The position numbers were made by a program, and so were the translations under genes. Positions 1 to 64,000 of a stretch of 64,000 bases of DNA are shown in pieces (the first letter of the stretch is position 1; each line of letters opens with the position of its first letter). The stretch is from Styela clava (Eukaryota), in NCBI RefSeq assembly GCF_964204865.1, contig NC_135261.1, positions 6,448,001 through 6,512,000 on the forward strand. The letters run 5' to 3'. Below the pieces are notes generated by a model. That model made no database searches. It saw nothing but the letters and a program-made list of their open reading frames with translations, and was not told where the DNA came from.

Positions 1-93
1 GATCAAAGATGTGCTTGTATGCACAATTATCTGGAATATCAAATAGCAGATGTGCTTTGTATTTACAAATATTTCTACCTCTGTGAGAAGTAA
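1..93 (+). CDS. Collectin-like gene c0: 3' end of last (CRD) exon only, truncated by window edge
   Basis: Frame 1 reads DQRCACMHNYLEYQIADVLCIYKYFYLCEK-TAA, matching the C-terminus of the nine other copies. It is followed by the A-type 3' flank. Confidence 0.85.
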   Translation, partial: DQRCACMHNYLEYQIADVLCIYKYFYLCEK

Positions 94-2488
94 TTGAAAA
101 TTTCCCTTGTTGCTTTCGATCAATGGGATTAATTTTAACAAAAGAAGAAACAATATTTATAGTAACTCTGCTAAAATATTACCACGACTTGTCATTGTTC
201 AAAAATTGAGTAACTAGTATTTTTATTCACTAAACTCTGCTTTCGACTTTTTTGTGAATCTATATATTCATTGTAAACTCGTTCTTTATCAAAAATCTTT
301 TTAAATATAAAATTATGTATTCTAAGTTTGATCATATCAAATGATATTAATTGTTGAGCTTAATTAGTGCGTTTTTCTGGACTTATAGAATTTTTCGATG
401 AATGATAATAAACGGAATCATTATACACTTGTGAATATTAAAAACGGAGATTTGCACAGTTTTGGAGTAATAGTCAAAAATAGAAAAAGTTAATATCACT
501 ATCTGAGGCACTAATGGAGATGAGGTGAAGTTGAGCGAGTTGAATATTTTTTCCACTATTTTTTGAATGCGACTAAGTTCATCATATCCTCAAACTCATA
601 GCTAAACCTCGGCATGTTATCTTTGATGTTGAAAGTTTCTATTTTTTGAAAAACTTCAAACAGAGATCTAACCTAAAGGCCATTGCGCTAAACTTTTAAT
701 GTACCAAATCTCACCCTCAAAAACGAGATGAAATTGAAAAAAAAAATGTTAATAAAGAAATAAAGGGCTATGCGTTAACAAATGATAGGCCACCATAGTA
801 GGGGCGATTTAAACAGTATCCCGTGTTATAAATATCACCATGTAAGAAATTAACCTCTCACCTCCAATTCCACTTTATTATTCACCATTTGATTATATTC
901 ACACTAAACCATGGGGTGATGAGGTACTGATTGTCAAAGAATGAATAAGCCGAAGCTTTCACAATTCGTGTTAATAGTACAAAATACTCTCGACACAGCA
1001 GTATCACCACCAAATACTATCGATTGACCTTGTGGTTTAGTACTCTGATCTTCATGTAGATTATTTTCATTACGATATTGATGTTTAATTCATTGTGTCA
1101 CCTCGCCAACCTTCTATGAGATTACTTCACTATACCATAGTCGTGTGTAGTTTTATACAATTTACAGATCTCTGAGGATAGGGTTATCACAATTGAACCT
1201 TGTTATTTTCAAGCTATCGAACATAGGGCTCGATATTTTGACAGTACCTTTTCAGAAGAGTCTCTAATGGAGTTTATATACATTAGACGCGCAATTCGAA
1301 ATATACGTGCCCACTGAATTAGGATTTGGTACGCACGGCCCCCATCGATCATTTTTATAAAACCACTAGCGTAATCATGCACCACAATTCAAAAACCACC
1401 TTTCCCTTTGCGACGGTCGTGATGCAATGGGAATAGGATACTGGTACCATACCATAAGACGTAGAATGAGGCGCACTGCCAATAAATTGCTTTGATTGGT
1501 CTTATATTCATACAGAAGGCGTAGATAAGATAAGATGATATAATGTATTGTTAATTTTTTTAAATTATGCTTGATACTTTACATTGGCTATCGTCTCCTA
1601 GTGTTTTTTTAACAAAATGCAAGCAATCCTTTTTGTTGTAGAATATAGATTATAGATGTAATGATTATATTCTTAATAATGCATAGCGAAGCAGATAAAC
1701 CGCTTTATACGCGGCGAAGTCTTACTAATACGTAGTTAGACAACTGATGATTATATGATCCCAAACGTCATTTAAATGGTCTCCTCATTAGACGACTTCT
1801 TGGGATGCCGTTTAGAAAATAAATTTGGGGTTTATAATGCTACGCGAGACGTGTGTTGCAAACCAAGTGTAACGTTTTGTGCAAAAACTCGTTTTTCTTA
1901 TGAATTCAAAAGGTTTTACCCCACGTAAGCGTCTTAGATAATGAATTGAATTTGAAAGCAATTTGCTTAACATTACTTACATATCATTCCACTGTTTAAA
2001 ATAAACAGGTCTACAATGAATATTATCTTTGAATAATAAATACTATATCATCATTCTTGAATTCACTGCTGCTTGGATAAAGTAATACGACTAGTATTTA
2101 ATATTTGTTCCCTACAGGCATTATTCAGGTACAACAGATCAATTAATGCAAAAAGGTGTCTTCATTTTTAAGGTTAAAATGGTACCGTATTTCAAATTTA
2201 GACAAATTCATTTAACTAACAGTATATTTTAATATTTGACCGTTTAAAAAGAAATATTTAGAACAAGAGTACCTAATGATTAAATATGGGAAAAATGGGA
2301 ATAAATTTTTGAACCGGTAAATTCTGGAACATGAATTTAAAAGAAAAAAGAAAACTTGAAAGAAAAAAATAAGAGTTGGGCCCCTGTGAATATTGAGAGC
2401 TTGGACTTTAGTCTGAGTTGTAGATAAGCTGCAGACTAGAATTTCTGATTATTGTTGCAACCTTTTAAAGTTGAAGAAAGAAAAGAGA

Positions 2489-5400
2489 TTACTTCTCACA
2501 AAGGTAGAATCGATTTAAAAAACAACGGGTATCTATCAACATATATTGCAGAGGCTCGAACATGCAAGCACAACGTTCATTTTGGCGATCTGGTTCTCCT
2601 TCACTCCATGGTGTATTAGAAGTAGTTGATGAAACTCCGTCCGACCATTTCCAGTTGTCTTGTTTCTCAAGATCGTCAAGTCCTATCCAAATCGAAGTTC
2701 CTGTTCTTCTGATGAACTTGTCGAGAAGATCGCTTAAAATATAATTATGTTTTGAACGTGATGAAGTTTCATTTAAGCCATTATTAATTGAATTATAAAA
2801 AGTTGGAAAAATGTAAAATACTAAACATTAAGCTCATTGCGTTTTCTATTTAAATTGGGCTACTGGGCTTTTAATAAAATAAAACACAGTATTTTTTAAT
2901 GAAAGGTAAAGTTGGTCATTATGTATTCGATACCACTTTATAGCTCTAAATATTACGATCACAATTTTTGATTAAACGAAAATTTTACAATTCCAGAGCC
3001 CAGAAATTAGTTCAGGCCAAGATTACACATTCCGGCTTCAAGATAATTAGACTTCCGGTGTTATTTGTTGTGAAAACAGTTTCAATATTTGTCGCAACCA
3101 ATTATTTTCAGTTTTTAAATACTTCAAGATAGGGAATAATATTACGAGGCGATTATTTTTTAAAAGTCTTCCGAGGCATACGGGATTCGATATTCTTATA
3201 TACTTCGATATAGAATGACTATCGTCTTCCAATGGAAATGTATGATCATCAAAGTGTTTCTGATGTGTTAAAATATTTGTTGATCAAAACACATTTAAAA
3301 CCTTAATTAGTGTTCTCCAACCGTTTCGACCGTGTATGTATCATTTCCGAAAAATAAAAATATTGGGGGCGGACATCGAAATTAAATATTTCTTTTATTT
3401 TAAATTTTTTATTACACCATTTATAAATATCATTCGCGCTTCTATTTTGCGATGTTTTAAGAAACAGAACAAGAAACACGTTCTGTCATACACGTAACAC
3501 CCTCTCCACGATGCAGGAAAATTAATTCAATTATTTTTATACTTAATGTTTTTTCTCGTTAACAAATCTTCTTGTCTGCGTTTATTTTAGTTGGAAAAGA
3601 AAATCGGCTCAAAACAGGGTCCTGAACATACTGGTAAGCAAAGCACTAATGGAGACTGATGTCTGTTCGTCTCTAGATGACACCACACTTTGTTTTTTTT
3701 AAGGAGTTGTTAGTTAAGACCTCTGAGCACTTTACACAACCCAGGTTATCGAATGTTCATGTACTTATAGTGGCACAAGAATTCAATTAAAAGTACTTGA
3801 ATAAGCTAGTGTTATGACAATATAACATCAGCGCACTCAAGGAAAACCAAATGCCACGAAACAAACGGTTTTGCATAAATGGTTTTGGAAACCATTGCAA
3901 ATATAATTAATCTTTATAAAAAATGATGAATCTAGTAAATACGTCTCCCATGGCCCTTTCAGAACTGAGACACTGCTCTAAACGAAAATTACCTATGAAT
4001 AACTGGGTTCCGTATACCCTTCGCTGCTAATCGGCCACCCAACAATTCACAATTTTTTCTGGCTGTTTGATAGTCTGTCGATACTTTGAATAATTTGTAC
4101 CAATATGGGTAACTGTGAACACGATACCAACCATCTGCTACTGGTTGTAAGGCTCGAGCTAAAATTAAAATAAAAACAAATATAGAAACCATATAAAAAA
4201 GCTTTTTAATTGATAAAAGCAGAATTAATCTGAAAATAGCCAAAGCTCCATATGGACGTTCAGATCAAGAATGCGATTTGCAAATTCTCAGTTTTTGACC
4301 ATATCTAACGAATCCGATACAATCAGGTAAAGCAGTGGTTCTCAACCGCCGGTCCGCGGACCGGTGGCGGTCCGCAACAACCTTGCTGCCGGTCCGCCAA
4401 ATATATTCCAATATCAATATATTATGAGTAAATTGCAAAATACAAAGTATTGATGGCATGTCTATTAGTTTTGTGATTTTTTTATTCTTTTTGGATCGTA
4501 GTACCGACATTGGTCTAACAACTAAACTTGGTAAGAAGTCCTCCGCCCATTTTGAACCCTGAAAGGCCTAAGTCTATGATTTCATAACGGGCTAACGTCA
4601 TAACGGAAGAGTCTAATAGCACATAGTACGGCAGCGCTTCACAACCAGTGATCCGCGAACTCGTTGCTAAATTATTCGTATTTTTCTATATTTTGTGTTA
4701 GAATTGAAATTAATTCGACTTTTCAGTAGGACAGCAATGGTATTCTCGTGAGAATCCCAATCAATTTTATCAATTTAGGCGCTCGAGCGTGGCTATCGGA
4801 TTCGTCTGTTGTCAAGTTTGCCAAAAAGCGGGAAAATGTATAAATTATTTTATGGCATCATTACAATTACAGCTTCACGTGATTTCGACGTAATGGAAAT
4901 AAATGCGTAAATAGGAAAGCTTTGCAAGGCAATGCCCATAGCGCAACCGTGCAAAATTGTCGCAACAATATGCGGCGCACGCTCGTACAGAAGATAACAA
5001 ACAATCAAAGTTCTATTTCATCGTCATTAATATACGTGAAAAGGCGCAGAAAATCGCTTGAAGATTTCAATCGAGAACGAAACACCCAGCTGACAGCAAA
5101 AAATTGCTATCATTTGCAATTATTCAAAAATTTGCCGAAAAAGTATATATTAAAATATTCGATTTGTTTTGGGCAACCCTGCCTCGACTTATTTTAGCCC
5201 TTGAAACAAAAATGTTAATAAAGGTGGTCCGCGAAGTAAAACTTTCCGTGAGAGTGGGGTGCGACATAAAAAAAGGTTTGAGAAGCGCTGTAGTACGGTA
5301 TATGATTGAGAACTTCGCAGTTCGCACGTTCCGTAATTTGACAGTCGTAATTGCATTCTTTTGATGAATTTTTGTGTTTTTGGTTAATTTTGAAGGTCCG

Positions 5401-6581
5401 CCGGTCCGCAAAATTTGTTTGGAAATTTCACCGGTCTGCGAACTAAAAAAGGTTGAGAACCACTGAGGTAAAGTGAGGTTTTCAAATAAAACAATGTAAT
5501 GAAGTGAAATAAATAAATTTGCAATAGTAACCTTTTTGTTCGAGGATTTGAACTGTGCGTGTCAAGTCATCATATCGTGAGCAATTACATGGTGTTCCGC
5601 TTTCTCCTTTAGCTCCCTGACGTCCCGTGGTGCCATTTTGTCCTGGCCGCCCGACATCGCCTTTTGCACCTTCTGGGCCTTTCTTGCCTGGTCGACATGT
5701 TGTTTGACATTGAGAATCGTTTGGAACTAAAGAATAAATATTTGAGTTTACAAAAACCTTACACGTGAGAGTTGCATTTAGTAGAGTTGTATTTGTATTT
5801 CTAAATTATTGCTTACATTGACTTTCTTGTATTCATGAAATTATCATTTCCAATAAATTATTTATTACAAGTCTGTAATTATTTAAAAATAATACACTAT
5901 TTTACCATTTCTTGCTGTTTCGCGCGCTTTTTCCATGATTAGAGATGCCATGTCCCAGGTGTCTAAAACTGAAAATATATACTCTCTTAAAACTCAATGA
6001 TCTGAAATCGGTCCTATTGAAAATTGTAATACCGGAATTATCATTTTATATAAAAAAAAAAACTGTTTTTAGACCCCAGGCAGGGGCTTAGCCAGGGGTT
6101 GATTTTGAGGGTCGTACCCCTCCCTCCCATACACCCACCCCCATTTGGAATGTAAAAAAAAAAAGCAGCTTTCTATATTATACATAGAAAATATTCGTAG
6201 CTTGTAACGATTTTTGGACCCTAAGACTCATGAAAACACACGTTTTCCGGCCAAGTTGCAATCTAACTTAGCAAATAGAAATTTTGCGAACAGATATATT
6301 GTACTGAACTCACATGACGTTGGCGAACACTTCTTATTTTTCTCTCTCTCAATTTCTCCCAGTTTCTGTTCCAGCATTTGGATTCTGATGTCGTATTGAT
6401 CGATTTTTGTTGAAGTTACATTTTCAATTTTACTAGATAGGCTCACGTTGTTATCAGAATTTCCCGAGCCAGGTTCGATCTCTGGACTCGTTGTGACAAA
6501 GCTAATATTGCTTCGATGTTCTTCAGCGCAACATTCAATTACGCATAGGAACGTAAGAGTGAAGAATGCTAACAAACTCAT
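2489..6581 (-). CDS. Collectin-like protein c1 (signal peptide, coiled coil, 11 GXY, C-type lectin; EPD motif)
   Basis: GT-AG exons 6581-6314, 5968-5906, 5726-5532, 4158-3993 and 2732-2489 splice in frame (phases 1,1,1,2). Starts MSLLAFFTLTFLCVIECCA; collagen GKKGPEGAKGDVGRPGQNGTTGRQGAKGESGTP; WIGLDD; ends GEPDRQNERCACMFEPLQYMLIDTRCFLNRFYLCEK. Confidence 0.9.
4333..5465. mobile_element. Non-autonomous hAT (Charlie-like) element in c1 intron 3
   Basis: TIR CAGTGGTTCTCAACC...GGTTGAGAACCACTG; perfect 8-bp TSD AGGTAAAG; absent from paralogous introns. Confidence 0.85.
4632..5290. mobile_element. hAT MITE nested in the 4333-5465 element
   Basis: TIR CAGCGCTTC...GAAGCGCTG; perfect 8-bp TSD TAGTACGG. 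Confidence 0.8.
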
Positions 6582-9453
6582 TTTGTAGTGAGAACCAGCA
6601 CAAGAGTATCGATTTAGGATAATGAAGGTATGACTTAGGTACCAACGCTTTATATATAGTGCTTCAATTTTTTTGGCAACAATTGCTTTTTTTGTCAATT
6701 GCCGGGCAGCGCAATAACCTCGCGGTTAAAGTCTTAAGATGCAAATGGCATCGCAGATTACACAAATCCCATGCGCCCTGCCCCACTCAGGGGGTAATTA
6801 ATTGAGTAAGCACTGCTGAAACCAAAAATTTCAGGTCATTCCAAATAAATAGTAGCTACTCAAAAATCATTAGAAGTCAGTGGTTGCTTTTACATGGCCT
6901 TGTTTTGAGTGAAAGGCGCAAGTAAGCGTCGTACTTAAAGAAAATCACATTTCTTGTTTCTTTATTTTAACAGAGAATGGCCCAGATTGGTGAGAGTGTT
7001 TAATTTTGTAATATTTTTGCAACGTTAGTTAATTGTGAAATCATACATATTGTTTTTCTTTATTTTCAACAGCCATTATTTGATCCTGTCTTTGCATTTA
7101 TAAAATTTTACTCGCTGCCACATACCCATTCAAATTTCCCCCCTTATAATAAGCCCATACTCATTTTGTATCCGTGTTCGATACAAAAAATATTTTGACT
7201 GTAAAATAATAGTTCTTATACCGCGCCACCTATACATTTGATTTGATTTTCTCTAATTTGATAGGGTAATTCGGGTCAAGAGTCGGTGTCCTGTTTCAAA
7301 CAACATTAAGCGTCGCATTAAAATAAATCCAGCTTTCTTGGTTCCTATTTCCGCAAAATGATCGGGAATCGTTAGAGTACTTTTTTTTATTTATTTCAAC
7401 CGTATTACCCCATGGCGCAATCACCCATATGTAATCGTATGAGCCCATAGCCCATTACGTAAACAATATATTTTTAATTGTTTTCATTTATATTTTCAAG
7501 CGTGTAATTCAAATGTATATTTAAACATTCAATGCGTAGTCAAAAAGTAACCATGATTGAGAGAATTTTTAAAAACTTTTGGGTCAACTTTTTGTGGAAT
7601 TCTGCTTAGAATAAGCAGATACTCAATTGACATCCATGTTTGATACGAGAAAATAATTGAAGTAAATGACAAATAGTTATTGACCCCGCTATCCTTATGT
7701 TTGAATTGAATCAAATAATTCAATCGGGGTTAGGTATCGGTGACATCCTCAACGTTGCATTTGTCACATATTCGCATATAAGGTCGAGGAGGTAACGCAA
7801 AGTATCAAATCTCAATATCATATTGAAAAAAAGAATCGACATGAATATCAGTGTTTTAAACCACATAGTCAACCATAGGTCAGTCGATTGTATTCGATGG
7901 TGAAACGAGTGCCAAAAGTATTTTGTACTATTAACATTAATTGTAAAAGGTTATGCATAGTCGTTTTAGACAATCGTTCATCTCATCATCCTATAGTTTT
8001 GTGTGGACATGAATGTAATGAAACAGTGAATAATACAGTGGATCTGGAGGTGGGGGGTTTAATAATGTACTGATTGTAAAAGTTTGAATATGCCAAAGCT
8101 TTTGAAATTAATGGTAACAGTACAAAATAATCTTGACACAGATTTCAACATTAAATACAATCGATTGACCTGTGGTTGACCATGTGGTTTAGTAAAATGA
8201 TCTTCGTGTCGATTCTTTTCATTAAAATATTGGAGCTTGATACTTTGTGTCACCTGGTCAACTTTATATTAGAATATGTGACAAATGCAACATTTAGGAT
8301 GTCCCCAATTTATAACCCCGGTTGAATTATTTGACTCAATTCAAAGGTAAGTTTGGCGGGTTCAAACTTAAATTTTTGTCCTTTACCTCGTTTATTTCTC
8401 GTATCAAACAGAAATGTTAAGTAAGTTTATACTTATTCCAAGTGGAATTCCACCCGAACATTACTAAAATTTCTCAACAACTCAAAGGGTTACTTCTTGA
8501 TTACGCATTGATTGTTTTTATATAGACCCCCTTAAATATAAAGAAAAATATTAAAAAAATATATTATTTGAGTAATGGGCTCTTGCCTATCACATATCTT
8601 GTGTGTAGGTGTAATAACGTTAAAAAAAGTACTTCCACCGATTTTCAATCTATCTGGGGAAAATTATAAAAAAGGAGGAAGCTGAAATTTTTCATAATGC
8701 GACGCTCAAAGTTGTTTTCAGCATGTCACAGACTCTTGAACCTCATAAAACAATCAGAGGAAATCACTCTAATTAGAGGAAATAAAATCGAATGTATAAC
8801 GACGTGGTATGAAAATATTTTTTATTTGTCCAAATATTTTCTGTATCAAACAGGAATATAAAATAAGTATCGACTTATTATAGGGGAAAATGTGAAACTG
8901 GAATAGGTATGCGGCATCGAGTAAAATTTTATGAATGCAAAAACAGGCACAAATATTGGCTACTGAAAAGAGAATATAGTTACAAATGTATGATTTCACA
9001 ATTAACTAACGTTGCAAAAATATACGAACTTAAACACTCTCATGATTCTGGGTCATTCTCTATTAAATAAAATAAAAACGAGAAATGTGATTTTCATTAA
9101 ATACAACGCTTACTCGCGCCTTTCACTCAAACAAGGCCATGCATAAGCAACCACTGACATCTAATGATATTTGAGTAGCTACTATTTATTTGGAATGACC
9201 TGAACCTTTTGGGCTCGCCACTGCCTACTCAATTTATTACCCCCTGAAAGGGGCAGGGCGCATGGGATTTGTGTAATCTGCGATGCCATTTGCATCTTAA
9301 GACTTTAACCGCGAGGTTATTGCGCCGCCCAGCAATTGACAAAAAAGGCAATGGTTGCCAAAAAAAAATGGAGAACCATATAAAAAGCGTTGGTACCTTA
9401 GTTATACCTCCATTATCGTAAATCGATACTCTTGTGCTGGTTCTCACTACAAT
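6582..9453. promoter_or_regulatory. Divergent intergenic region c1/c2: imperfect palindrome, putative bidirectional promoter
   Basis: The left half is the reverse complement of the right half (e.g. 7700-7790 vs 8270-8345) around a ~90-bp unique spacer at ~7977-8064. A TATA-like motif lies ~75 bp upstream of each ATG. Confidence 0.7.
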
Positions 9454-11728
9454 ATGAGTTTGTTAGCATCCTTCATTCTTACGTTCTTATGCGTAGTTGG
9501 ATATTGCGCTCAAGAACATCGAAGTAATATTAGCATTATGACAATGGGTCGAGAGATCGAACCTGGCTCGGGAAATTCTGATAACAACGTAAGCCTATCT
9601 AGTGAAATTGAAAATGTAACTTCAACGAAAATTGATCAGTACGATAGCTTGACCAAAAGAATCAAATCGCTGGAGCAGAAAGAAATTGAGAGAGAAAAAG
9701 TAAAGAGCTGCTCGCCAATGCCATGTGAGTTCAAGAAAAAAATATCCTTTGTTTTTGTAGATGTTTCTTATTTCCCAAAATTGAAGATTAAAATATAGAA
9801 TCGCAGTATAGATTCACGTCTTATTACTATGCAAATGAGGTTACGAACCCATCAAATAAAGCTTTTTTAGTTAATTGTCAAACTGCATTGAGCTAAAAAT
9901 ATTGGTATGATATTGATCGCGATATTTCGTTATTGCAATTTTTAATTTTGGGGCAGTTTTTTTTGCTTATCGGGTTTTATGAAAATCAATTTTCATTTTT
10001 TTTCAGTTGTCAACATCTGTGATATGGCATCGTTAATTACAAAAAAACTCGAGAAGAAGCAACAGACGGTGAAACTTTTTTTTTTAAATAATTACTTGTA
10101 TGACTTGCAGTAGAGAGTGGGTGTTTTTCTTATCATTGGCCACATATAAAGTTTTCTATAATTTATCATTTAAACTTTCTGATGCAAATTTTGAAAGTGT
10201 TTTGCAAAATAGGCGCTAAAACTTTCTTACGTTTAGATTCAAAATATTTAATAATCTGCTGTGCAAAAGCATTGAATGTTAATTTAATTCATTCGCCTTT
10301 TCGTGACATAATCGGCATAAGAATCCCATAAGTACAACAAATCGAGTTGTTTGGTCTTTTTTTTTATTTCATTCTCCAAATCTTTTAATTAACGTGACAT
10401 TAAAGAGACATAAAAAAAAATTATAAAAAAAATTCAGCATATTAATTTCATCTATATATGCATTTTTAAGCTTTTTTCCAAATTAAAATATTTATCGTTT
10501 TTAGTTCCAAACGATTCTCAATGTCAAACAACATGTCGACCAGGCAAGAAAGGCCCTGAAGGTGCAAAAGGTGATATCGGATCACCAGGACAAAATGGTG
10601 CCACGGGACGTCAGGGAGCTAAAGGAGAAAGTGGAACACCATGTAATTGTTCACGATATGATGAGTTGGCACACAAAGTTCAAATCCTCGAAAAAGGTTA
10701 CTATCTCAAACTCATACCCTTATTATACTTTGTTACATTGTTTCATTCAAAAACCTTACGTTAATTGATTGTGTCTCAAGTGTTGCATATGAAAAAAATG
10801 AGGATTTGCGGTTATCTCTATGGATCTAAACTTCGAAATAAAGCTTTGGCTTTTTAGATGAATTCCTCTTTTAAGTAATTATAAAGTTTTTTTTAAATAG
10901 TTCTATATTTGTTCTTATTTTAGTTTTAGCTCGAGAATTACAACTGCTAGCGGATGGTTGGTATCGTGTTCACAGTTACCCATATTGGTACAAATTGGCC
11001 AATGTATCGTCGGACTATCAAACAGCCAGAAAAAACTGCGAACTCATGGGTGGCCGATTAGCAGCAAAGGGTATTCGCAACCCAACTATTCGCAGGTAAT
11101 TAAACATTGTGTATTACAATGATTACAATTATTTAAACAGCGAAAACACTTTGACGATCGCATATATTCCATGGGAAAGCTGGTATGATTTCCTCGTAAG
11201 GGGTTTGAAAGTTATGTAGTTCTATACTGCCTCCAACTTAAAGTGATACTGCCTCCAACTTAAAGTGATAAAAATTTCAAATCGATTAATCTAAAAGTTG
11301 CGCAAAAGCGATTTTTTACAACAAAAACTGTTAAATACACTATATTTGATTTTAAATTTCCCTTAAGTCAAATTAACGATTGAATACCTCAATTTTTTAT
11401 GTGAGTGTTCCAAATCTAATTTGTATTTTTTAAAATATATGACATTGTTGGTTCAAATTGAAGACAAAATATTATTATTTTCAGCGATCTTCTCGACAAG
11501 TTCATCAGAAGAACAGGAACTCCGATTTGGATAGGACTTGACGATCTTGAGGAACAAGATAACTGGAAATGGTCGGACGGGGTTTCATCAACTTCTTCTA
11601 ATACACCATGGGGCAGTACCGAACCAAATAATCCAACTGAAAGATGCGCTTGCATGTACCAGCATCGGCAATATCAGTTAGCAGATTTTGGTTGTGATTA
11701 CAAACACTTCTACCTTTGTGAGAAGTAA
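9454..11728 (+). CDS. Collectin-like protein c2 (EPN motif); exon 2 is 1 bp short in an A7 run
   Basis: Exons 9454-9724, 10007-10068 (62 bp vs 63 in all others), 10505-10696, 10930-11095, 11485-11728. Ends TEPNNPTERCACMYQHRQYQLADFGCDYKHFYLCEK. Confidence 0.8.
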
Positions 11729-27517: not shown

Positions 27518-27966
27518 CACCAGTGTTTTTATAAACACGAAATGGTCAGTATATTCGAAATGGAGCCAGTATATTCCGAATTGTGCGTCTAATGTATATA
27601 TCCCCTAATTGGAGACTTTCTTGAATAGATACTATTAATCGTATTATCGAGTACCACGTCTGATAGCTTGGAAATAACGATGTTCAATTATGGTTCACCT
27701 AGCTTTGGAAACTTGTGAATTGTATAAAGTTTTCAATATTATACTCAAGACACATGTCGCACAGTCGCGAATACGCGTCATCTTTGTAATTAAACCGGCA
27801 TGGGTTAACAATCGTAGAAATGTTTAAACCCACGACGATAGTATAGTGAAATATTCTTATATAAGGTTGACGGGGTGACTAAATATCATAACGAAAAGAA
27901 TCGAAATGAAGATCAATGTTTTAAACCCCACAATCAACCACAGAACAATCGGTTGTATTTGGTGGT

Positions 27967-34823: not shown

Positions 34824-34826
34824 AAT

Positions 34827-51825: not shown

Positions 51826-54461
51826 TTTGTAGTGAGGACCGGCACAGGAGTATCGATTTACCATAATGGAGATATGACTTAGGTACCAACGATTTATATA
51901 TAGTGCTTCATTTTTTTTCTTGGCAACCATTGCTTTTTTTGTCAATTGCCGGGCAGCGCAATAACCTCGCGGTGAAAGTCCTAAGATACAAATGGCATCG
52001 CAGATTACACAAATCCCATGCGCCCTGCCCCACTCAGGGGGTAATAAATTGAGTAAACACTGCTGAAACCAAAAGGGTCAGGTCATTCTAAATAAATAGT
52101 AGCTACTCAAATATCATTAGAAGTCAGTAGTTGTTTGTACATGGCTTTGTTTTGAGTGAAAGGCTAGAGTAAGCGTCGTACTCAATGAAAATCCCATTTC
52201 CTGTTTCTTTATTTTAACAGAGAATGGCCCATATTAGTGAGAGTGTCCAATGTTGTAATAATTTTGCAACGTTAGTTAATTGTGAAATCATACATATTCT
52301 TTTGCTTCATTTTCAACAGCCATTATTCAATCCTGTCTTTGCATTTATAAAATTTTACTCGCTGCCACATACCCATTCAAGTTTCCCCCCTTATAATAAG
52401 CCCATACTCATTTTGTATCCGTGTTCGATACAAACAATATTTGGACTGTAAAAGAATATTTCTTATACCGCGCCACCTATATATTTGATTTGATTTTCTC
52501 TAATTTGATAGGTTAATTCGGGTCAAGAGTCGGTGTCCTGTTTCAAACAACATTAAGCGTCGAATTAAAATAAATCCAGCTTTCTTGGTTCCTATTTCCG
52601 CAGAATGATCGGGAATCGTTAGAGCACTTTTTTATTTATTTCAACGGCATTACACCATTTCACACCCACCCATGGCATATGTAATCGTATGATCCCAGAG
52701 CACATTACGTAAACAAAATATTTTTAATTGTTTTCATTTATATTTGAAGCGTGTTATTCAAATGTAAATATAAACAATCAATGCGTAATCAAGAAGTAAC
52801 CATGATTGAGAGAGTTTTTAAAAAACATTTGGGTCAACTTTTTGTGGAATTCTGCTTAGAATAAGCAGATACTTAATTGACATCCATGTTTGATACGTGA
52901 AATAATTGAAGTAAATGACAAATACTTATTGACCCCGCTATCCTTACGTTTGAATTGAATCAAATAATTCAATCGGGGTTAGGAATCGGTGACATCCTCA
53001 ACGTTGCATTTGTCACATATTCGCATATAAGGTCGAGGAGGTAACGCAAAGTATCAAATCTCAATATCATAATGAAAAAAAGAATCGACATGAATATCAG
53101 TGTTTTAAACCATATAGTCAACCATAGGTCAGTCGTTTGTATTCGATGGTGAAACGAGCGGCAAAAGTATTTTGTACCATCAACATTATTTTTAAAAGGT
53201 TATGCATAATCGTTTTAGACAATCGTTCAACTCATCATTCTATAGTTTTGTGTGAACATGAATTTAATGAAACAGTGATTAATACAGTGGATCTGGAGGT
53301 GGGAGGGTTAATAATGTACTGATTGTAAAAGATTTGAATATGCCAAAGTTTTTGAAATTAATGTTAACAGTACAAAATTATCTTGACACAGGTTTCAACA
53401 TCAAATACAATCGATTGACCTGTGGTTGACCATGTGGTTTAGTAAAATGATCTTCGTGTCGATTCTTTTCATTATAATATTGGAGCTTTATACTTTGTGT
53501 CACCTCTTCAACCTTATATGAGAATATGTGACAAATGCAACGCTGGGGATTCCCAGATTTATAACCCCGGTTGAATTATTTGACTCAATTCAAACGTAAG
53601 GTTGGCGGGTTCAAAAATAATTATTTGTCCTTCACCTCAATTATTTCTCGTATCAAACAGGAATGTTAAGTAAGTATCTGCCTATTCCACGTGGAATTCC
53701 ACCCGAACATTACTAAAATATCTTAACTATGGTTAGGGTTACTTCTTGATTATGCATTGATTGTTTTTATATACATTTGACACCCTTAAATATGAAGAAA
53801 AATATTAAAGAAATATATTGTTTGTGTAATGGCTCATGGCTATCACATATGTTTTTTGTGTGGGTGTAATAACGTTAAAAAAGTACTCTCACCGATTTTC
53901 AATCTTTATGGAGAAAATAAAGAGACGAAAAAGCTGGGATTTTTTTAATGCGACGCTTAAAGTTGTGTTAAGCATGTCACAGACTCTTGAACCTGATCAC
54001 TCATCAGTGACACCCTAATTAGAGGATATAAAATCGAATGTTTAACGACGTGGTATAAAAATATTTTTATCAGTCCAAATATTTTCTGTATCAAACAGGA
54101 ATATAAAATAAGTATCGACTCATTATAGCGGAAAATGTGAAAATGCGGCATCCTGTAAAATTTTATAAATGCAAAAACAGGCTCAAATAATGGCTACTGG
54201 AAATGACGCAAGAGAATATAGTTACAAATGTATGATTTCACAATTAACTAATGTTGCAAAAATATACAAATATTAAACACTCCACGATTCTGGGTCATTC
54301 TCTATCAAAATTTAAAAAAAACGAGAAATGTGATCAGCCCGGCAATTGACAAAAAAGGCACTCGTTGCCAAAAAAATGAAGCACTATATAATAAGCGTTG
54401 GTACCTAAGTCATACCTTCATTATCGTAAATCGATACTCTTGTGCTGGTTCTCACTACAAA
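51826..54461. promoter_or_regulatory. Divergent palindromic intergenic region c7/c8
   Basis: Colinear with 6582-9453; spacer at ~53226-53313; ~235-bp deletion in the c8 arm at ~54335. Confidence 0.7.
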
Positions 54462-56592
54462 ATGGGTTTGTTAGCATCCTTCATTCTTACGTTCCTATGC
54501 GTAGTTGAATGTTGCGCTCAAGAACATCGAAGTAATATTAGCATTATGACAATGAGTCCAGAGATCGAACCTGGCTCGGGAAATTCTGATAACAACATAA
54601 GTCTATCTAGTGAAATTGAAAACGTAACTTCAACAAAAATCGATCAATACGATATCAGAATCAAAGCGCTCGAACAGAAACTGGAAGAAATTGAGAGAGA
54701 GAAAGTAAAGAAGTGCTCGCCAACGTCATGTGAGTTTAAGAAAATATATCTGTTTGTAGGCTCTCTTACTATTTCTTCTAGTTTGCTTCACCTTTCTATG
54801 TTTATCAAATTGCAGATAAAATTATATAGTATCAGCATAGATTTAGGTTTTATTAAGAAATCGATGGTCTTTGTTGTAATCCCGATAAGTAAATTAAAGA
54901 AAGGATTTTATATTTAATTTCCAGATTTTATCAATCAAGGGGGTGGGTGGGATGTAGTCTGAAGATTATATTTGCCAAGTTAGATCGAAACAGCTAGGGG
55001 GTCCGGTAAAAAGCGTTTCAAGCTACGAAAAATTGATATGTATGATACAAAAAGATCATTTTTAATTTTTTTACATTTCAAAAATGGGGGGAGGGAAGGC
55101 CCCCAAAACCACCCCCTGGCTACGCTCTTCATGAGTCTAAAAATTGGTTTTATATTTAATGCTGATTTCATTATCCCAATTTTTAATATAAGACTTCTAG
55201 TATAAGATTTTCAGAGAGAGTTTTGAGAGAGTATATATTTTCAGTTTTAGACACCTGGGACATGGCATCTCTAATCATGGAAAAAGCTCGAGAAACGGCA
55301 ATAAATGGTAAAATATTTGATTGTTTTTAAATAATTACAGACTTGTAATAAATATTTAATTGATAAGGATAATTTCATGAACACAAGAAAGTCAATGTAT
55401 GTGATAATTTAGAAATACAAATACAACTCTGCTGATTGCGACCCTCACGTGTGGGAATTTCGTAAACTATAATAATTATTCTTTAGCTCCAAACGATTCT
55501 CAATGTCAAACAACATGTCGGCCAGGCAAGAAAGGCACTGAAGGTGCAAAAGGTGATATCGGATCACCAGGACAAAATGGCGCCACGGGACGTCAGGGAG
55601 CTAAAGGAGAAAGCGGAACACCATGTAATTGCTCACGATATGATGAGTTGGCACGCAAAGTTCAAATCCTCGGAGAAAAAGGTTAATATCTCAAATTGAT
55701 ACCCTTCTTATACTTTATTACATTATTTTATTTTAAAATCTAACGTTAATTGATTGTGTCGCAAGTGTTACATATGGCAAAAAATGGGGATTTGCATATA
55801 GCTCTCTTGATCTAAACGTCGATATGGGGCTTTGACTTTTTTAATGAATACAAATTTAAGGCAATTATAAAGCTTTTATATAATTCTATATTTTTTTTTA
55901 ATTTTAGCTCGAGAATTACAACCCTTAGCAGATGGTTGGTATCGTGTTCCCAGTTACCCATATTGGTACAAATTGTTCAGAGTATCGTCAAGCTATCAAA
56001 CAGCCAGAAAAAATTGCGAACTCATGGGTGGCCGATTAGCAGCGAATGGTATTCGTAATCCAACTATTCGCAGGTAATTTGCATATTACAATGATTATAG
56101 CATTTTCATTTAATCTTTCGGCTCAACACATTTAGAAATGGATACTATTCTAAAAAAATGAAAAAAATAAGCAATGGGTGCTAGCAATTAAATGTTTTAT
56201 TTTCATTTGTCGTTTTCAATAAAATAAAGAATGTTAGAAATTTAAAATCGTAAAAAAAATACACTAAACTAATTATTTGTAAATTTTAAATCATAACATT
56301 GTAGGTCCCAATTCATCTTTAATGTGTTTAAAATAATATTATTTTTAGCGATCTTCTCGACACGTTCATCAGAAGAACAGGAACTTCGATCTGGATAGGA
56401 CTTGACGACCTCGAGAAACAGGACAACTGGAAATGGTCGGACGGAGTTTCATCAACTTCTTCTAATACACCATGGGGTGAAGGAGAACCAAATGGTCCAA
56501 CTGAAACATGTGGTTGTATGTGGAGTACCCTACAGTACAGATTAGCAGATATCCGTTGTAATTATCAAACATTCTACCTTTGTGAGAAATAA
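54462..56592 (+). CDS. Collectin-like protein c8 (EPN motif)
   Basis: Exons 54462-54729, 55245-55307, 55487-55681, 55908-56073 and 56349-56592 splice in frame. Ends GEPNGPTETCGCMWSTLQYRLADIRCNYQTFYLCEK. Confidence 0.9.
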
Positions 56593-57885: not shown

Positions 57886-59528
57886 CTCACAAGACTCTGT
57901 CTCTAATATTTATTCTGTATTAATATGTTATTTGGTTTAAAGGATTTTGCATTGTATATACGTGTATATGCTGGGTTATTATGGAAAATGAATACGAATA
58001 AATCATTTGCTTTGTATTTATTTAATTTAAACGAAAGTTTCAAATAATCATCTCAAAGAAGTATGTTTCTTCTAATTTGATTCACTAGTGCAATCTTATA
58101 AGTTCAGTACCTCAGCATGTCAGCAAATTTTCAACCAATATTTCGCCAGGCTATGTATGAATACGTAGCACAGCATATTATACTTCAATCAGGTATGGTT
58201 AAATCATACCCAGGCAAGCCTCGGGTGAACAAAATCAAATCAAGGTATTGCAGTCTTTTCCACTCATAAAAACCTCGCTTAAGTCGTGCACAAACAAACT
58301 CGCATTACGCATCCGGAAACAATCTCGGACTTTGATAAAATCGAGAGTAGATGACAGACTTGGGCGTCGGATAATCTCGATGCAGTGATTGAAGTTCCTA
58401 TTTGCCCAATGCTCAAGTTGTAGTGTTTGCTCAATTTGCAATATAAAACTTGCAGGCACGGACATTTTAACTTAAATTAAAGTCGCAAAAAGAGTTGTTA
58501 CAATCAGAAGATATTTGGTTAACTCCGATAGTGATAAAGAAACCACTCAGGTTGTGTACCAGGTTATACCAGGTTAGGGTGCAGGATGTGTCGCATCTTG
58601 GTGCGCACACTTCAAGAGTACCGAATTATATTTCGGAAGAAATCAATCGGTCTATTCTGTAGGTGACTTTCCGCATCCTGTTTACGTCGTACATGTATCT
58701 AACATGTATGTACATGTATTTTGCCGTAACTGTATCTTTCTGAGTGCCAGCAATTACAAGGTAGTGTACATAAATAGTACACGGGAAAAGTAATGTTTGG
58801 CCTACTTTCTCAATATGACCTCCAAGAGTGCGACGTCGGGGAAAATGCGAGAACCGATACGCCCACGCAAAATCCCAACACGATAATAAGGGATTTATTA
58901 CCTTTTTATCGTTGACAGTAAGTCGTTCCCATTTAACGACAGTCGCAGATAGAATTAGATATGAATTCTTACTAACTTATATGTAAGGTTTGATTGAAAC
59001 GGAGTAAATGCATTCTTTCTTCTCTGCGACGCGTTTGATAAGTTACGATGATATTTCTTCAGCATCTTGTCGCCGTTGATGAAGTAATAACTCGTTTTCT
59101 CTTACTGGACTCCTAGTTGAAATCAAGCATCGTCGCCCTAATGGAACAAGATACATAAAGAGAATAAATACCGTTGTGAGGGGCTAAATACCACGTCACG
59201 CTTATCAGCGACTTTTTCGGTAAAAATGTAGCTTCGAGCCTGACTCGAGAAATTCTGTTAACGACGGAAGCCTATCTAGTGCAATTGAAAATGTAACTTC
59301 AACAAAAATCGATCAATACGATTTCAGAATCAAAGCTTTGGAACAGAAACTGGAAGAAATTGAGAGAGAAAAATTAAAGAAGTGCTCGCTAACGTCGTGT
59401 GAGTTTAGAAAAATATATCTGTTTCTTGATTCTATTCCGATCTTTGCAATAATTTAACTTTGATTTAAAATATATAATATCAGCATAGATTTTCGTCTCA
59501 TTCTAAGCCAATGTTGTTAGTTCTGAAC

Positions 59529-59854
59529 CAGGGATGTGCAACAGGCGGCTCGCCGAACCATTTAGTGTGGCTCTAGTCAACACTCAAATATTTATCCATC
59601 AAGAATAATATCCTAATCCGACAGTTTATGTTGAAAACGATGCTTACATGGATATAAACACATAATGTTCTTGCTTTTGTCGCTGCGTTAAATATTTCGC
59701 CGTTTTGCCCGGTGTATTTATTACCAATTACTTTAGGGCTGAGCGATAGTCGCATTATCATTTCTTGCCTTTCTCGCTTAATTTTTTGTGTGGCTCGGCG
59801 ATATGTCTGAAGTTGGTTATTATGGCCCGCCGATAAAAATGTAACACATCCCTA
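59529..59854. mobile_element. hAT MITE in c9 intron 1 (related partial copy at ~61697-61959)
   Basis: CAGGGATGTG...CACATCCCTA; TSD TTCTGAAC/TTCTAAAC. Confidence 0.7.
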
Positions 59855-62238
59855 TTCTAAACCAAGAAAATCAAAAAGAAGTTAGATCTGAATGCCAGAT
59901 TGTATCACAAGTTTTATCGCGAGTTTTGAGTACAAAGTATTCCTTTTATATTTATTGCGATATTCAATTATTACTATTTGGATTTTCAGCTTCATGATTT
60001 AAGGGATTCTCTTTACAGTTTTAGAAACCTGGGACATGGCATCTTTAATTGTGGAAAAAGCTCGAGAAACAACACTGAATGGTAAAATTATTGATTTTTT
60101 AATAAACAATTGCTGACTTGTATTAAATAGTTAAAATCATAATTGCATGATATCAGAAAGTCAATATAAGCGACACATTAGAAATACAAATACAACTCTG
60201 CTAAATGCAACACTCACGTGTAAGAATTTTGTAAACTAAAATATTTATTCTCCAGTTCCAAATGATTCTCAATGTCAAACAACATGTCGGCCAGGCAAGA
60301 AAGGCCCCGAAGGTACAAAAGGTGATATCGGACGACCAGGACAAAATGGCGCCACAGGACTTCAGGGAGCTAAAGGAGAAAGCGGAACATCGTGTAAATG
60401 CTCACAATATAATGAGTTGGCACATCAAGTTCAATTCCTCAAACAAAAAGGTGACTAGCACAAATCCATATCATTCTTTAAGGTACTCCCGTAGTATTTG
60501 AACTAAGATGGCGGACACCGGAACGTAGTATGTGTACCAGGTTATGGTTAGGCCTTAATTTCAGGTACAAATACTGCGAGAGTCACTTGGCTGAACCCCG
60601 AACTCGTAATAGAACTAAAATAAGGAAAATTGAAAAAAAAAACTAATCCTAAACTTGTACACATACTATGTTCAGGTGTCCGCCATATTGTGCCTCACAT
60701 GTTGTAAGCGGGCAAGAATTATTGATTTTTAATTGCTGTTTAGATCTAAAAGTCAATACTGTAGAGTCAGACCTATGGATCGTTGATATGTTGTTATTTT
60801 CTTGGTAATTTTTTTTCTTATCTTTATGAAAAAATCGCTTATCCCTGTAATTACTGGACCCATTGCTTTAACATTTTCGGTAGTTAAAGATTGTAATTTT
60901 GACGAAAAAACTATTACTTTCATTTATGCGCTTCCTGTCTCTATGTTCGAGCATAGCTCTTATGTAATTTTCAAAGCATAAGCAATTATCAAGCACTTTT
61001 ATATTTGTACTCATTTATTTTCAGCTCACGACTTACAACTCGTAGCGGAAGATTGGTATCGCGTTCCCGATTTTCTATTTTCGTACATAGTAGTCAAAGT
61101 ACCGTCAGACTATCAAACTGCCGGGAAACACTGCGAACGCATGGGTGGCCGATTAGCAGAAAATGATATACGGAGTGCAGCTATTCACAGGTAATATAAC
61201 ATTGGGATTTTTTGTACAAGGCCAAAAAACTCACAAATTTTTGCATTAATGGGGGGGGGGGGGGGGGGCTTTGTACAAATATTCCCAATATTGTATATTA
61301 CAAAGATAGTAGTATTGTATTGACATTTAGTCATTTGGCTCAACGAATATATAAACATCAATACTATTAAAAAAAAACTTTGACAATCGCATGTATCCCA
61401 CGGGAAAGCTGAGATGCTTCAATGTCGCTACCCTCATGTGTTTCTTCGTATAGGGTATAAAAGTTATGTTGTTTCTGGCTTATTTTGTCACGTAGAACGA
61501 GCGGACACCGGAGCGAAGCATGTGTACCAGGCTAGATTTAGGCAGGCATAATTTCAGGTACAGATACTACGGGAGTCACTTGAACTCGTAATGGAACTAA
61601 ATAGGAAAAATTGGAATAAAATTATGGTCTAACCCTAACCTGGTACTCATACTACGTTCAGGTGTCGGCCATTTTGTTTCACATACTTCGGGAGAGTCCA
61701 TATTTTTTGCCAGCAAGTATATAACCTCGATCCTACAGTTTATATTTGAAAAGGCACCCACGTGGATAAAAACACGTAATATTTCTTGCTCTTGTCGCCA
61801 CGTAAAATCTTCCACCGTTTTGCGCGGTGCTTTTATTACTGTAACGCTAAGCGATAGCCACATCCTCTTCATTTACTTTTCCCGCTAATTTTTGTGTGCT
61901 TCAGCTAAATGCCTGAAGTTGGTCATATGATCCACCGATAAAAATGTTGCACACCACTGGCTTATTTCTCTTACTTTTATTTTTATTTCGCATTTTATTC
62001 AATGCCTTAAAAAATAATAGGCCAAATTCCATTACTCCGATTTTAAAATTTTCCGGTTTTATTATTGGACTAAATTATATTGACTATGTTTGAAATATGA
62101 TAAATATTATTTTCAGCGATCTTCTTGACAACTTTATCAGAAGTGCAGGAACTTTTATCTGGATCGGACTTGACGACCTTGAGGAACAAAACAACTGGAA
62201 ATGGTCGGACGGAGTTTCGTCAACTTCTTCTAATACAC

Positions 62239-62848
62239 CAGGGGTGGCCAACCTATGGCGCATGCGCCAAACGTGGGGCATTGCATGATTAGAGGTGGCG
62301 CATTGCATCTTTAACTCTTTTCATGCCAAAATTGTTAATTGCACTTGGCTTCTCCACACCAAGCCGTTTTTTTTTGCAATATACATGGTGACTTTTGATT
62401 GTACCTAAAATCTATTCTCCTTACTCCACTTCGCCCACTTACGGCTTGTTGGAATTAGAAACAACAGGCGATTATCGACGTTAGCTTTTGGACGGACTTT
62501 ATGACATTCATCCTATACTTTTAGCAAAAATTAGTCTCAGTAACAACATTAACTCCAAGAATAAAAAAAACTGGCGAAAGTAAAACAGCAGCAAAAGTCT
62601 CATAAAGGCGGTACTTAAACAAAATTGATCAATTTTATTTATTATACTTCCTTGCTCAATTTCTATTCATGTGAAGTTGTAAATTGTAAAAACTACATAT
62701 ACGTGTGTATATATGTGTGTGTATTATAAATTTATATAATTTCAACAAGAAGCGGACATTAGGCGTGGGAATACAAGAGATTTACGGCGCATCTGAAACA
62801 TTATGTTTAAAACGTGGCGCATGGTATGTGAAAGGTTGGCCACCCCTG
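62239..62848. mobile_element. hAT MITE inserted in the c9 CRD exon
   Basis: Perfect TIR CAGGGGTGGCCAACCT...AGGTTGGCCACCCCTG; perfect 8-bp TSD TAATACAC. Removal restores NTPWSEGEPN. Confidence 0.92.
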
Positions 62849-64000
62849 TAATACACCATGGAGTGAAGGAGAACCAAATCGCCAAGATGAACGATGTGCT
62901 TGCATGTTTGGACTTGTGCAGTACAAAGTAATAGATATCGAATGTATTTACCAAGCATTCTACCTTTGTGAGAAATACGGTAATTGAAAACCCCTAGTTT
63001 TCCTCCTAGTTAAAGGGGATAATATTCAGAAAGTTGTATCGATGTTTATCTTTTTGCGAACGACGTAAGTTGTATGTTTACTACATGAAATCAAATACAC
63101 AAACTTTCCTTTTTTCTGAAAATTGTTATCAACTGCCTCGGTCGGCTAGCACCTGTATAACTAGTGATAGAAATAATAGATTATTGCTTATTTTGTCCTG
63201 GTTTTCGACTTTATGGCAGCGACAACTTGTGGGCTATGTGACTTGTTGCTTATTTTGTGCTTGCGTGCATATAGATTATCGAAAGTGACGGAAAACCTAG
63301 TTTCTATGGCGACCATCGGCTATGACAATTAGATCTTGTTAGAAATCGAGGCTGCAGCGATTATAAATTGTTGCTAATAACGACTCGGGCCTGTCGACTA
63401 TACAGTAATCGTTGGATTGCGATTGCATAGTCTTTTATTCACCACAGTAAAAAATTATTATCATTGGTTAATGATCAAAAATAAATATTATTATCTGACG
63501 TAGGGATGGATTATTCACTTCAAGTTCAATATTTTCCACATTTTAATCCGCATAATCAATCAATTGGCTAAGTAAGCCATTTTCCAATGCGACTAAGATT
63601 AACATGTTCCCAAAGTCATGCTAAAATCAAGCAGCATCTTTGATGCAAAGTGCTAGTATTTTTTCAACTTCAATTCCCCGAGACCGCATACCAAAGTGGC
63701 ATCGAAATAGCTATTTCAATTCCGGGATTTTGGTAATTCTAATTTTGCTGACTGTTTCCATTTCCAAAAGCACTAGCACAATCATACACCACAAATTCAA
63801 ATCATCTCAATGTCACATTTCCCATTTATCGCCTTTTTCAGCGATCGCGAAACAATAAGAATTAAATTTTAGTTCGGATGCAATTAACAACCACAACAAC
63901 CACAACATATTTACACCGGACTAATTATTGTGTAGCTAAGAGAGATAAGATTTTTTTGTCCACCAGTCAGTTACTCGTCTTTAGTTAGCTACGTCCGTCC

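Follow-up and report, generated by a model that had tools for sequence, protein, structure and literature searches.

The vertebrate collectins, such as CL-K1 (collectin-11), MBL, SP-A and SP-D, consist of a signal peptide, a Cys-rich N-terminus, a Gly-X-Y stalk, an α-helical neck and a C-terminal C-type lectin domain. The same build, with a predicted neck helix, is found in the proteins of a gene cluster in the tunicate Styela clava. This cluster, of about a dozen genes for collagen-stalked C-type lectins, was analysed in a stretch of 64,000 nucleotides (C16:6448001-6512000, hereafter the window). The two groups of proteins also share an EPN triplet. Unlike the vertebrate proteins, those of S. 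clava have a stalk of only 11 triplets, a long N-terminal coiled coil, an optional microexon of 21 residues, a CxC motif at the junction of collagen and neck, Ala, Ile or Val in place of the Asn of the WND motif, and a fifth Cys in the lectin domain. Identity to CL-K1 is only 21–22%, and the close relatives found were all S. clava proteins; the likeness to collectins is one of build. On balance, we lean towards the view that the cluster is a birth-and-death family of secreted, collagen-stalked lectins, in which mosaic modules and near-neutral change in the loops have produced what is likely a germline set of specificities.

Tunicates are the nearest relatives of the vertebrates and have no antibody-type immunity, so that the way in which they widen innate recognition is an open question. 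The locus offers a concrete route, in which a collectin-like scaffold is kept while the loops of the sugar site differ between copies and, apparently, between individuals. The locus is a real, previously annotated expanded family: RefSeq proteins named collectin-10-like or collectin-11-like [Styela clava] match the copies at 97–100% per exon, and the S. clava genome paper lists collectin among the expanded families and counts 25 MBL genes (PMC7540406). The collectin-like annotation and the MBL/collectin expansion were thus already known. In the literature searched, we found no description of the variable C-terminal loops of this cluster, of its mosaic 5'/3' history or of the loss of the WND Asn.

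The closest single-domain structure is TC14 from Polyandrocarpa misakiensis (PDB 1BYF, 1TLG), which superimposed with a TM-score of 0.86 and a root-mean-square deviation of 1.8 Å over 121 columns (28% identity); its sequence matched the array lectin domain with an E-value of 1.7e-9. Like the array domain, TC14 is a compact tunicate lectin domain. Loop 3, loop 4 and strand β4 together make up its one calcium site (PMC3293724). Unlike the array proteins, TC14 has no collagen stalk and forms dimers via helix α2. Its β4 strand provides Asp127 and Asp128 as calcium ligands, only the second of which is kept in the array copies. Other ascidian lectins, including the collectin-like proteins of Styela plicata, the glucose-binding lectin of Halocynthia roretzi and the MBLs of Ciona, come from the same animal group. 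Ascidian collagenous lectins have a proposed role in the complement system's lectin pathway (PMC5465252), and we propose the same for the array proteins.

In its genetic organization, the cluster resembles several diversified receptor families, namely the FREPs of snails, the VCBPs of amphioxus and Ciona, sea-urchin 185/333 and the clustered lectin-like receptors of vertebrates that vary between haplotypes (Ly49/KLR). As in these systems, the family is clustered, variation falls on the presumed binding face, gene content apparently differs between individuals, and segments have been exchanged between copies. Unlike in these systems, a ratio of nonsynonymous to synonymous change (ω) above 1 is not shown in the array, which also gave no sign of somatic diversification.

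Mosaic history and the variable tail

Six-frame translation of the window revealed the block WIGLDDL..NTPW nine times, on both strands, as described in the initial annotation, and a tenth copy of which only the last 30 residues are present at the window start (5-95). The ten copies, denoted A to J, were delimited by searching the window with BLAST for each single exon of copies C and I. The array reaches 30 kb further upstream, where the body of copy A and three more copies, K, L and M, are located; these are duplicates of F, G and H, respectively, diverged by 1–3%. An exon-4 search of the whole genome returned 133 matches at E ≤ 1e-5, the close ones being 13 on C16 (6.431–6.511 Mb) and a single one on C9. 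N9, as the C9 copy is called here, is intact; its RefSeq counterpart is P0006 (scaffold 98% identical, tail identical). The ten-gene array of the initial annotation is correct as a count of copies in the window; eight of them (B–I) are intact, with open frames of 286–291 residues, while J is broken, A is represented by its tail only, and the array continues beyond the window. The coding sequence of every gene is spread over four constant exons, which are bordered by AG/GT and agree in phase. Exon 1 encodes a signal-like N-terminus, N-glycosylation sequons and a heptad-rich helix; exon 2 encodes a Cys knot, the 11 Gly-X-Y triplets and, with CxC, the beginning of the neck; and exons 3 and 4 encode one half of the lectin domain each. 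Homology searches used single exons or database proteins, whereas alignments and codon analyses were based on the joined coding sequences.

Among the eight intact copies, the scaffold up to NTPW was on average 82.5% identical (72.6–90.8%), with 122 of 228 positions invariant; the term "near-invariant" used for it previously was an overstatement. The last 38 residues were on average only 57% identical (45–74%), with 11 of 38 positions invariant. These invariant positions form a framework made up of the P of EPN, the Glu before Cys, the C and M of CxCM, Q-Y, Asp and LCEK. The two parts of the last exon that are compared below are located as follows in copy C:

11560-11610, plus strand: conserved core NWKWSDGVSSTSSNTPW (17 codons)
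11612-11725, plus strand: 38-codon variable tail, with the EPN flanks, the β3–β4 hairpin and the residues after the calcium-ligand Asp

Nucleotide diversity across copies was 0.01–0.07 per site in the core, compared to 0.2–0.5 in an intron, and reached 0.33–0.44 in the most variable stretch of the tail, the same as in the non-coding flanks. At codons for invariant residues, silent variation was seen in 2 of 12 core codons and 8 of 10 tail codons (Fisher p = 0.008). The core could not be distinguished from the rest of the gene in this respect (49 of 113 codons, p = 0.12). For the entire WIGL..NTPW block, the Nei-Gojobori (NG86) synonymous divergence (dS) was 0.27, no lower than elsewhere in the gene (0.19–0.28), and special conservation of silent sites over the whole block was therefore rejected. 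The near-identity at silent sites that had been noted for the block thus holds for its core when set against the tail, and not for the block as a whole. The tail itself had a dS of 0.73 and a nonsynonymous divergence (dN) of 0.31, a three-fold higher synonymous divergence than elsewhere, while dN/dS was 0.11–0.6 across the remainder of the protein.

The variable residues fall into three patches, of which one flanks EPN, the second follows CxCM and the third follows the calcium-ligand Asp. All of the strings listed for these patches in the initial annotation were recovered exactly, the nine that flank EPN in copies B–J and the ten each after CxCM and after Asp in copies A–J. When placed on the strands of the predicted model, patch 1 (last-exon codons 43-45 and 49-51) lies in the long loop on either side of EPN, patch 2 (codons 58-61) comprises the end of β3 and the β3–β4 turn, and patch 3 (codons 68-69 and 71-74) comes after the Asp at the end of β4 and extends into β5. 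From sequence homology, with alignment to CTLD2 of Endo180, we take patches 1 and 3 to border calcium site 2. Patch 2 is placed by the model at the tip of the β3–β4 hairpin, presumably away from the calcium site, so that the earlier view of three patches surrounding this site would apply to two of them. The hairpin tip gives secondary contacts in some lectins.

The 3' flanks of the genes form three classes, between which no alignment can be made: α (B, D, E, G, L), β (A, C, F, K, H, M) and γ (I, N9). The tails follow these classes, with LID in α, (I/L)AD in β and LAD or VVD in γ. The upstream regions, introns 1 and 2 and exons 1–3 describe a different, star-like tree. The trees for the 5' and 3' modules reject each other in the approximately unbiased (AU) test (p = 0.0055 and 1e-50). 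Exchange was also indicated within the last exon (p = 0.02) and within the tail (p = 0.04) by a permutation test of the pairwise homoplasy index (PHI) type, and about half of the informative site pairs displayed all four gametes. As a consequence of this mosaic history, much of the contrast between scaffold and tail reflects the combination of a younger or homogenized 5' module with older 3' modules. Several copies are broken or damaged, including J, A and M, as well as K, which has lost its stop codon, and E and H, which have lost Cys residues; this fits a birth-and-death family.

We propose that each gene combines a common 5' module, from the promoter to the first half of the lectin domain, with one of three old 3' modules (α, β or γ) that would supply the final 38 residues of the lectin domain together with the 3' untranslated region. 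In this 38-residue tail, a framework that stays fixed (EPN-type triplet, Glu, CxCM, QY, Asp, Cys and LCEK) would be interleaved with about 20 loop positions at which change is tolerated. Diversity in the loops may then have arisen from the old split of the 3' modules, from recombination or gene conversion that re-paired modules and mixed patches within the tail, and from substitution at an approximately neutral rate.

Codon models and differences between individuals

Variation of this kind could also be the product of diversifying selection, as the initial annotation had suggested. We fitted the models M0, M1a, M2a, M7, M8 and M8a with a codon-model likelihood program, using F3x4 frequencies. 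For the last exon of 14 copies, all three comparisons were significant: twice the difference in log likelihood (2ΔlnL) was 17.4 for M1a/M2a (p = 1.6e-4), 23.3 for M7/M8 (p = 9e-6) and 16.5 for M8a/M8 (p = 5e-5), with ω of 2.6–3.0 at 12–16% of the codons, all within the tail. For the tail alone on its own tree, the values dropped to 5.9, 8.4 and 4.6 (p = 0.05, 0.015 and 0.03); with full optimization of the branches, M1a/M2a gave 6.9 (p = 0.03). When the pseudogenes J, A and M were removed, the signal in the tail was gone (2ΔlnL = 0.3, 2.5 and 0.2; p = 0.87, 0.28 and 0.64). It was also gone from the last exon when gamma-distributed rate variation among codons was included, both with 14 copies (0.8, p = 0.68) and with the 11 intact ones (0.1, p = 0.96).

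The tree of the tail has three times the length of the tree of the block (5.7 and 2.0 substitutions per codon, respectively), and the single synonymous rate that the standard models assume for all codons therefore fails. The null model with rate variation (lnL = -1467.0) performed better than M2a (-1470.9), and an added class with ω > 1 gained nothing. In the variable half of the last-exon codons, ω was 1.0–1.4, not distinguishable from neutral, and in the other half it was 0.07–0.1. The ratio on which the earlier proposal had staked itself is thus not above 1 as far as the data tell, and the significance of the M7/M8 comparison, which had been suggested as a check, does not survive the removal of pseudogenes or the inclusion of rate variation. 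When rate variation, pseudogenes and recombination are taken into account, the data do not support diversifying selection, and on the strength of the tail-only, no-pseudogene and rate-variation controls, we rejected positive selection from standard site models as a firm conclusion. The locus is a cautionary case, in which a textbook signal of positive selection in site models was made by mosaic history and higher silent divergence. Ongoing rapid diversification was rejected as well: in the recent duplicates F/K, G/L and H/M, 3 of 28 amino acid changes lie in the tail, compared to an expected share of 0.147 (binomial p = 0.80). In keeping with change at a near-neutral rate, per-site divergence within 3' lineages was 0.21 in the tail, 0.17–0.19 in the 3' flank and 0.23–0.29 in intron 3.

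We also compared the copies, at the protein level, with RefSeq proteins of an earlier annotation, which was made from another individual. Several tails are nearly identical between the two individuals, including those of P0157 and copies F and K, of P0158 and copy E (97%), and of P0160 and copy L (92%). For five proteins (P0152, P0153, P0154, P0159 and P0161), identity does not exceed 92% with any scaffold and is 71–76% with any tail found here. These values are suggestive of genes that appear to be absent from the present haplotype.

Lectin domain, putative calcium site and alternative explanations

By inspection, the translations begin with a hydrophobic N-terminus (MSLLASFILTFLCVVECCA), followed by N-glycosylation sequons and Cys residues ahead of the collagen (CSPTS..CQTTC). 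Exon 2 contains a Pfam collagen domain (PF01391, E = 2e-7, above the cut-off), and the last exon alone was recognized as Lectin_C (PF00059, E = 3.6e-11). In nine copies the Gly-X-Y triplets are uninterrupted, 11 in number or 17 in copy F, while copy E has one break, from Gly to Glu. It is thus supported that the genes encode collectin-like proteins of a secreted type. An AlphaFold2 (AF2) model of P0151, the RefSeq protein of copy I, was calculated from an alignment of 19 sequences. The lectin domain was modelled with a predicted local distance difference test (pLDDT) score above 90 (85–97 for most of residues 190-311), and a helix was predicted at residues 160-179, ahead of the lectin domain; the N-terminal part and the stalk were of low confidence. 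The best Foldseek matches to the model were the CL-K1 trimer, SP-A, Mincle, SP-D and DC-SIGN, and the structures of CL-K1, SP-A and SP-D were aligned over both the neck and the carbohydrate recognition domain. In total, 500 matches were counted, all with E ≤ 0.001, and a C-type lectin-like domain was present throughout the matches listed. A three-copy complex prediction for residues 150-311 of P0151 scored 0.46, compared to 0.38 for the single control, a result that speaks neither for nor against trimers.

At the first triplet of the stalk, all copies have the conserved sequence P-G-K-K-G-P (P-G-K-K-G-T in copy I). MASPs dock to the collagen motif Hyp-Gly-Lys-Xaa-Gly-Pro, in which the Lys binds the CUB domains of the MASP. 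The stalk sequence resembles this motif, and it may be a docking site, through which the proteins might activate complement.

Alignment with HMMER placed the L-A-D of copy I on the W-N-D of CTLD2 of Endo180, with EPN and Glu in register, showing that the WND Asn is lost in every copy. The position reads (L/I/V)(A/I/V)D throughout, where the initial annotation had given (L/I/V)(A/I)D for the WND motif, and the Asn is replaced by Ala, Ile or Val in 14 of 14 copies and in 11 of 11 RefSeq relatives; (I/L)-N-D is kept in more distant S. clava relatives. EPN, EPD and QPN all occur as described, with EPD in copies B and A, QPN in G and EPN in the other copies. The fifth Cys of the lectin domain lies within CxCM. 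In canonical C-type domains, the WND Asn is a ligand both of the calcium ion and of the sugar. Compared with the canonical calcium site 2, the array copies keep the EPN-type triplet, Glu and Asp, but not the Asn. In TC14, the calcium ligands are a Glu in loop 3, an Asn in loop 4 and two Asp residues in β4, and the residue that matches the WND Asn is one of these Asp ligands (PMC3293724). In the array, the first of the two acidic ligand positions of β4 is hydrophobic, leaving the predicted calcium site one ligand short of both the MBP-type and the TC14-type site. The uniform loss of the Asn makes the family useful for testing a C-type site without that ligand.

Several observations weigh against a history of near-neutral change in sugar-binding loops. 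With the WND Asn missing from all copies, sugar binding may be weak or atypical. The power of the codon tests is low, with 38 codons and about 9 independent lineages, so that a modest excess of replacements is possible, and there are estimates of ω above 1 (1.1–2.5). The tail as a whole evolves as fast as the non-coding flanks despite its 11 invariant positions out of 38 and strong constraint on about half of the codons, and some positive selection is therefore possible. In the 18 most variable codons, which were picked post hoc, dN was 0.27–0.64, compared to 0.16–0.29 for the 3' flanks within lineages. Finally, P0155 is 98% identical to copy C over 252 residues of scaffold, while its tail is only 76% identical, with differences at 9 of 38 residues, more than expected from simple neutral drift. 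(By eye, the patches of the P0155 tail that are unlike copy C resemble the tails of A and H.) Together with the significant standard tests and the at least five genes of the other individual that appear to be absent here, the last two of these observations would suit a model in which an arms race with microbes, or self/non-self recognition, favours new residues at 8–12 loop codons. We consider this unlikely, if still deserving of attention, in view of the loss of the signal in the controls, the raised synonymous divergence of the same stretch, the distribution of changes in the recent duplicates and the recombination within the exon, which inflates site-model tests.

The opposite possibility, that the copies are largely redundant and the loop residues irrelevant, with the genes drifting towards pseudogenes, would account for the ω of about 1 at half of the last-exon codons, for the loss of the WND Asn and for the state of the 13 cluster copies, three of which are broken while three more have lost the stop codon or a Cys or have a broken collagen triplet. 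It is difficult to reconcile with eight intact frames with intact splice sites, with the strict retention, in the 38-residue tail itself, of the EPN-type triplet, Glu, Asp, the four framework Cys and LCEK, with the low ω of the other codons and of the rest of the protein, or with the frames being kept in the alleles of another individual, and we hold relaxed constraint to be rather improbable. A non-lectin role, in which the domain binds protein through its variable face or acts as a humoral developmental factor in the manner of TC14-3 in budding tunicates, possibly at metamorphosis, seems less probable still. The missing Asn and the odd fifth Cys in CxCM would fit such a role, as would the similarity to TC14, the cytostatic activity of TC14-3 (PMC3293724) and the high expression at metamorphosis that has been reported for the expanded complement and lectin genes of S. 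clava (PMC7540406). However, a domain devoid of a calcium site would hardly be expected to retain E-P-N, the downstream Glu and the Asp, and the cytostatic activity of TC14-3 itself depends on the binding of calcium and galactose (PMC3293724). A further possibility is a germline cassette system in which recombination or gene conversion re-pairs a common scaffold gene with old, divergent 3' "specificity" modules and mixes tail patches between copies, the nucleotide-conserved core upstream of the tail serving as the homology anchor. Haplotypes would then differ in their sets of lectin heads, which would yield individual-specific repertoires for recognition of microbes or of self and non-self, for example between gametes or at settlement; we regard it as about as doubtful as relaxed constraint. 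The birth-and-death family with mosaic modules and near-neutral loops is the reading we prefer. Within it, the gene structures, the domain content, the mosaic history and the ω of about 1 are shown by the data, whereas secretion, the oligomeric state, the binding of calcium and sugar, the activation of complement and any differences in specificity are inferred. The likely outcome would be a set of germline-encoded lectins that differ in fine specificity, the heads of which would be presented on trimer-based stalks with a possible MASP-docking Lys. For eight intact genes with a strictly kept framework, a functional repertoire of specificities is the most sensible reading.

Individual copies and their surroundings

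The copies in the window have the following coordinates and exons (microexons in brackets):

1-98, plus strand: copy A, last 90-odd bases of the final exon, with the tail ..DQRCACMHNYLEYQIADVLCIYKYFYLCEK followed by the stop; the remainder is upstream of the window
2489-6581, minus strand: copy B, intact, 290 residues, EPD variant, α-type 3' end; exons 6581-6314, (5968-5906), 5726-5532, 4158-3993, 2732-2489, with AG/GT splice sites and one open frame
9454-11728, plus strand: copy C, frame of 290 residues without the microexon, β-type 3' end; exons 9454-9724, 10505-10696, 10930-11095, 11485-11728
17383-19563, minus strand: copy D, intact, 291 residues, α-type 3' end; exons 19563-19296, (18960-18898), 18723-18526, 18296-18131, 17626-17383
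22095-24943, plus strand: copy E, open frame of 291 residues, α-type 3' end; exons 22095-22362, (22895-22957), 23130-23327, 23571-23736, 24700-24943
36152-39074, minus strand: copy F, intact, 286 residues, β-type 3' end; exons 39074-38864, 37685-37437, 37092-36936, 36395-36152
44903-47177, plus strand: copy G, intact, 290 residues, QPN variant, α-type 3' end; exons 44903-45170, (45491-45553), 45727-45921, 46151-46316, 46934-47177
49512-51825, minus strand: copy H, open frame of 289 residues, β-type 3' end; exons 51825-51558, (51005-50943), 50837-50646, 50411-50246, 49755-49512
54462-56592, plus strand: copy I, intact, 290 residues or 311 with the microexon, γ-type 3' end; exons 54462-54729, (55245-55307), 55487-55681, 55908-56073, 56349-56592
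59234-62992, plus strand: copy J, pseudogene; exon pieces 59234-59396, 60256-60446, 61019-61190, 62117-62240, 62850-62977
62241-62849, no strand assigned: non-autonomous DNA transposon, MITE-like (miniature inverted-repeat transposable element), 609 bp, in the last exon of copy J

The microexon in intron 1 is 63 nucleotides long, preserves the frame, encodes a 21-residue helix (FLDTWDMASLIMEKARETAIN) and is conserved in B, D, E, G, H and I. It is carried by RefSeq isoforms, which is why the last exon was counted as exon 5 in the initial annotation. Copy I with the microexon is the RefSeq protein P0151 (LOC120329837), at 98.5–100% identity per exon. In copy C, the microexon has diverged and is 62 nucleotides long, so that its inclusion causes a frameshift. 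It has a run of A7 where the protein from the other individual implies one base more, the difference being a genuine defect or else an error in the homopolymer; the RefSeq model of copy C in this assembly is a truncated protein of 181 residues (P0163).

Other copies carry lesions of their own. The first exon of copy A is truncated at the 5' end, matching only bases 174-268 of the reference exon, and the copy is therefore probably a pseudogene. In copy E, one canonical framework Cys is lost (DTLGFLSR) and one collagen Gly is changed to Glu, as noted above, and in copy H the first Cys of CxCM is lost (ERGVCM). The 17 triplets of copy F result from six duplicated ones, and its exon 1 has a deletion of 19 codons. 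Upstream of the window, copy K has lost its stop codon and exon 1 of copy M has a deletion of 5 nucleotides. Copy J lacks the first ~100 bases of exon 1 and the stop codon, and its last exon is split by the 609-bp insertion. This element has ends GGGGTGGCCAACC... and ...GGTTGGCCACCCC that are inverted repeats, is flanked by a duplication of the target TAATACACCA, and sits exactly at the boundary between block and tail.

The orientations of the copies are A+, B-, C+, D-, E+, F-, G+, H-, I+ and J+. Neighbouring copies are thus head-to-head or tail-to-tail, with I and J as the sole tandem pair, and a simple tandem array was rejected because most copies alternate in orientation. The intergenic regions of the head-to-head pairs B/C, D/E and H/I (6582-9453, 19564-22094 and 51826-54461) are about 2.5–2.9 kb long and 89–93% identical between pairs. 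The two halves of each region are inverted copies of each other (for example, 6293-7962 and 9746-8086, at 78%), and judging from their sequence they look like a duplicated bidirectional promoter unit.

Beyond copy K, two lone copies of exon 1 are present upstream of the window, at G000:C16 about 6426255-6426394 and 6430126-6430393; these are leftovers from additional rounds of duplication and deletion at the margin of the array. Additional clusters of C-type lectin exons were found on C13 (16.6-16.9 Mb), C19 (4.40-4.49 Mb), C8 (14.74-14.78 Mb) and C10 (4.05-4.08 Mb), with about 40 of the 133 exon-4 matches on C13 alone. The clustering of these matches indicates that large lectin arrays are common in the S. 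clava genome.

Mobile elements also occur between the genes. A retrotransposon of the Ty3/Gypsy type, with long terminal repeats (LTRs), is found on the minus strand between copies E and F (27966-35013). It is delimited by 188-bp direct repeats (27966-28153 and 34826-35013) that are 98.9% identical, and contains two long open frames, 34733-32340 and 32339-30984, in which zf-CCHC, RVT_1, RNase H and integrase domains were recognized. A minus-strand open frame between copies F and G (41148-42365) gave a weak match to zf-RVT (E = 5.6e-4, below the Pfam cut-off) and is probably a fragment of the long interspersed nuclear element (LINE) type.

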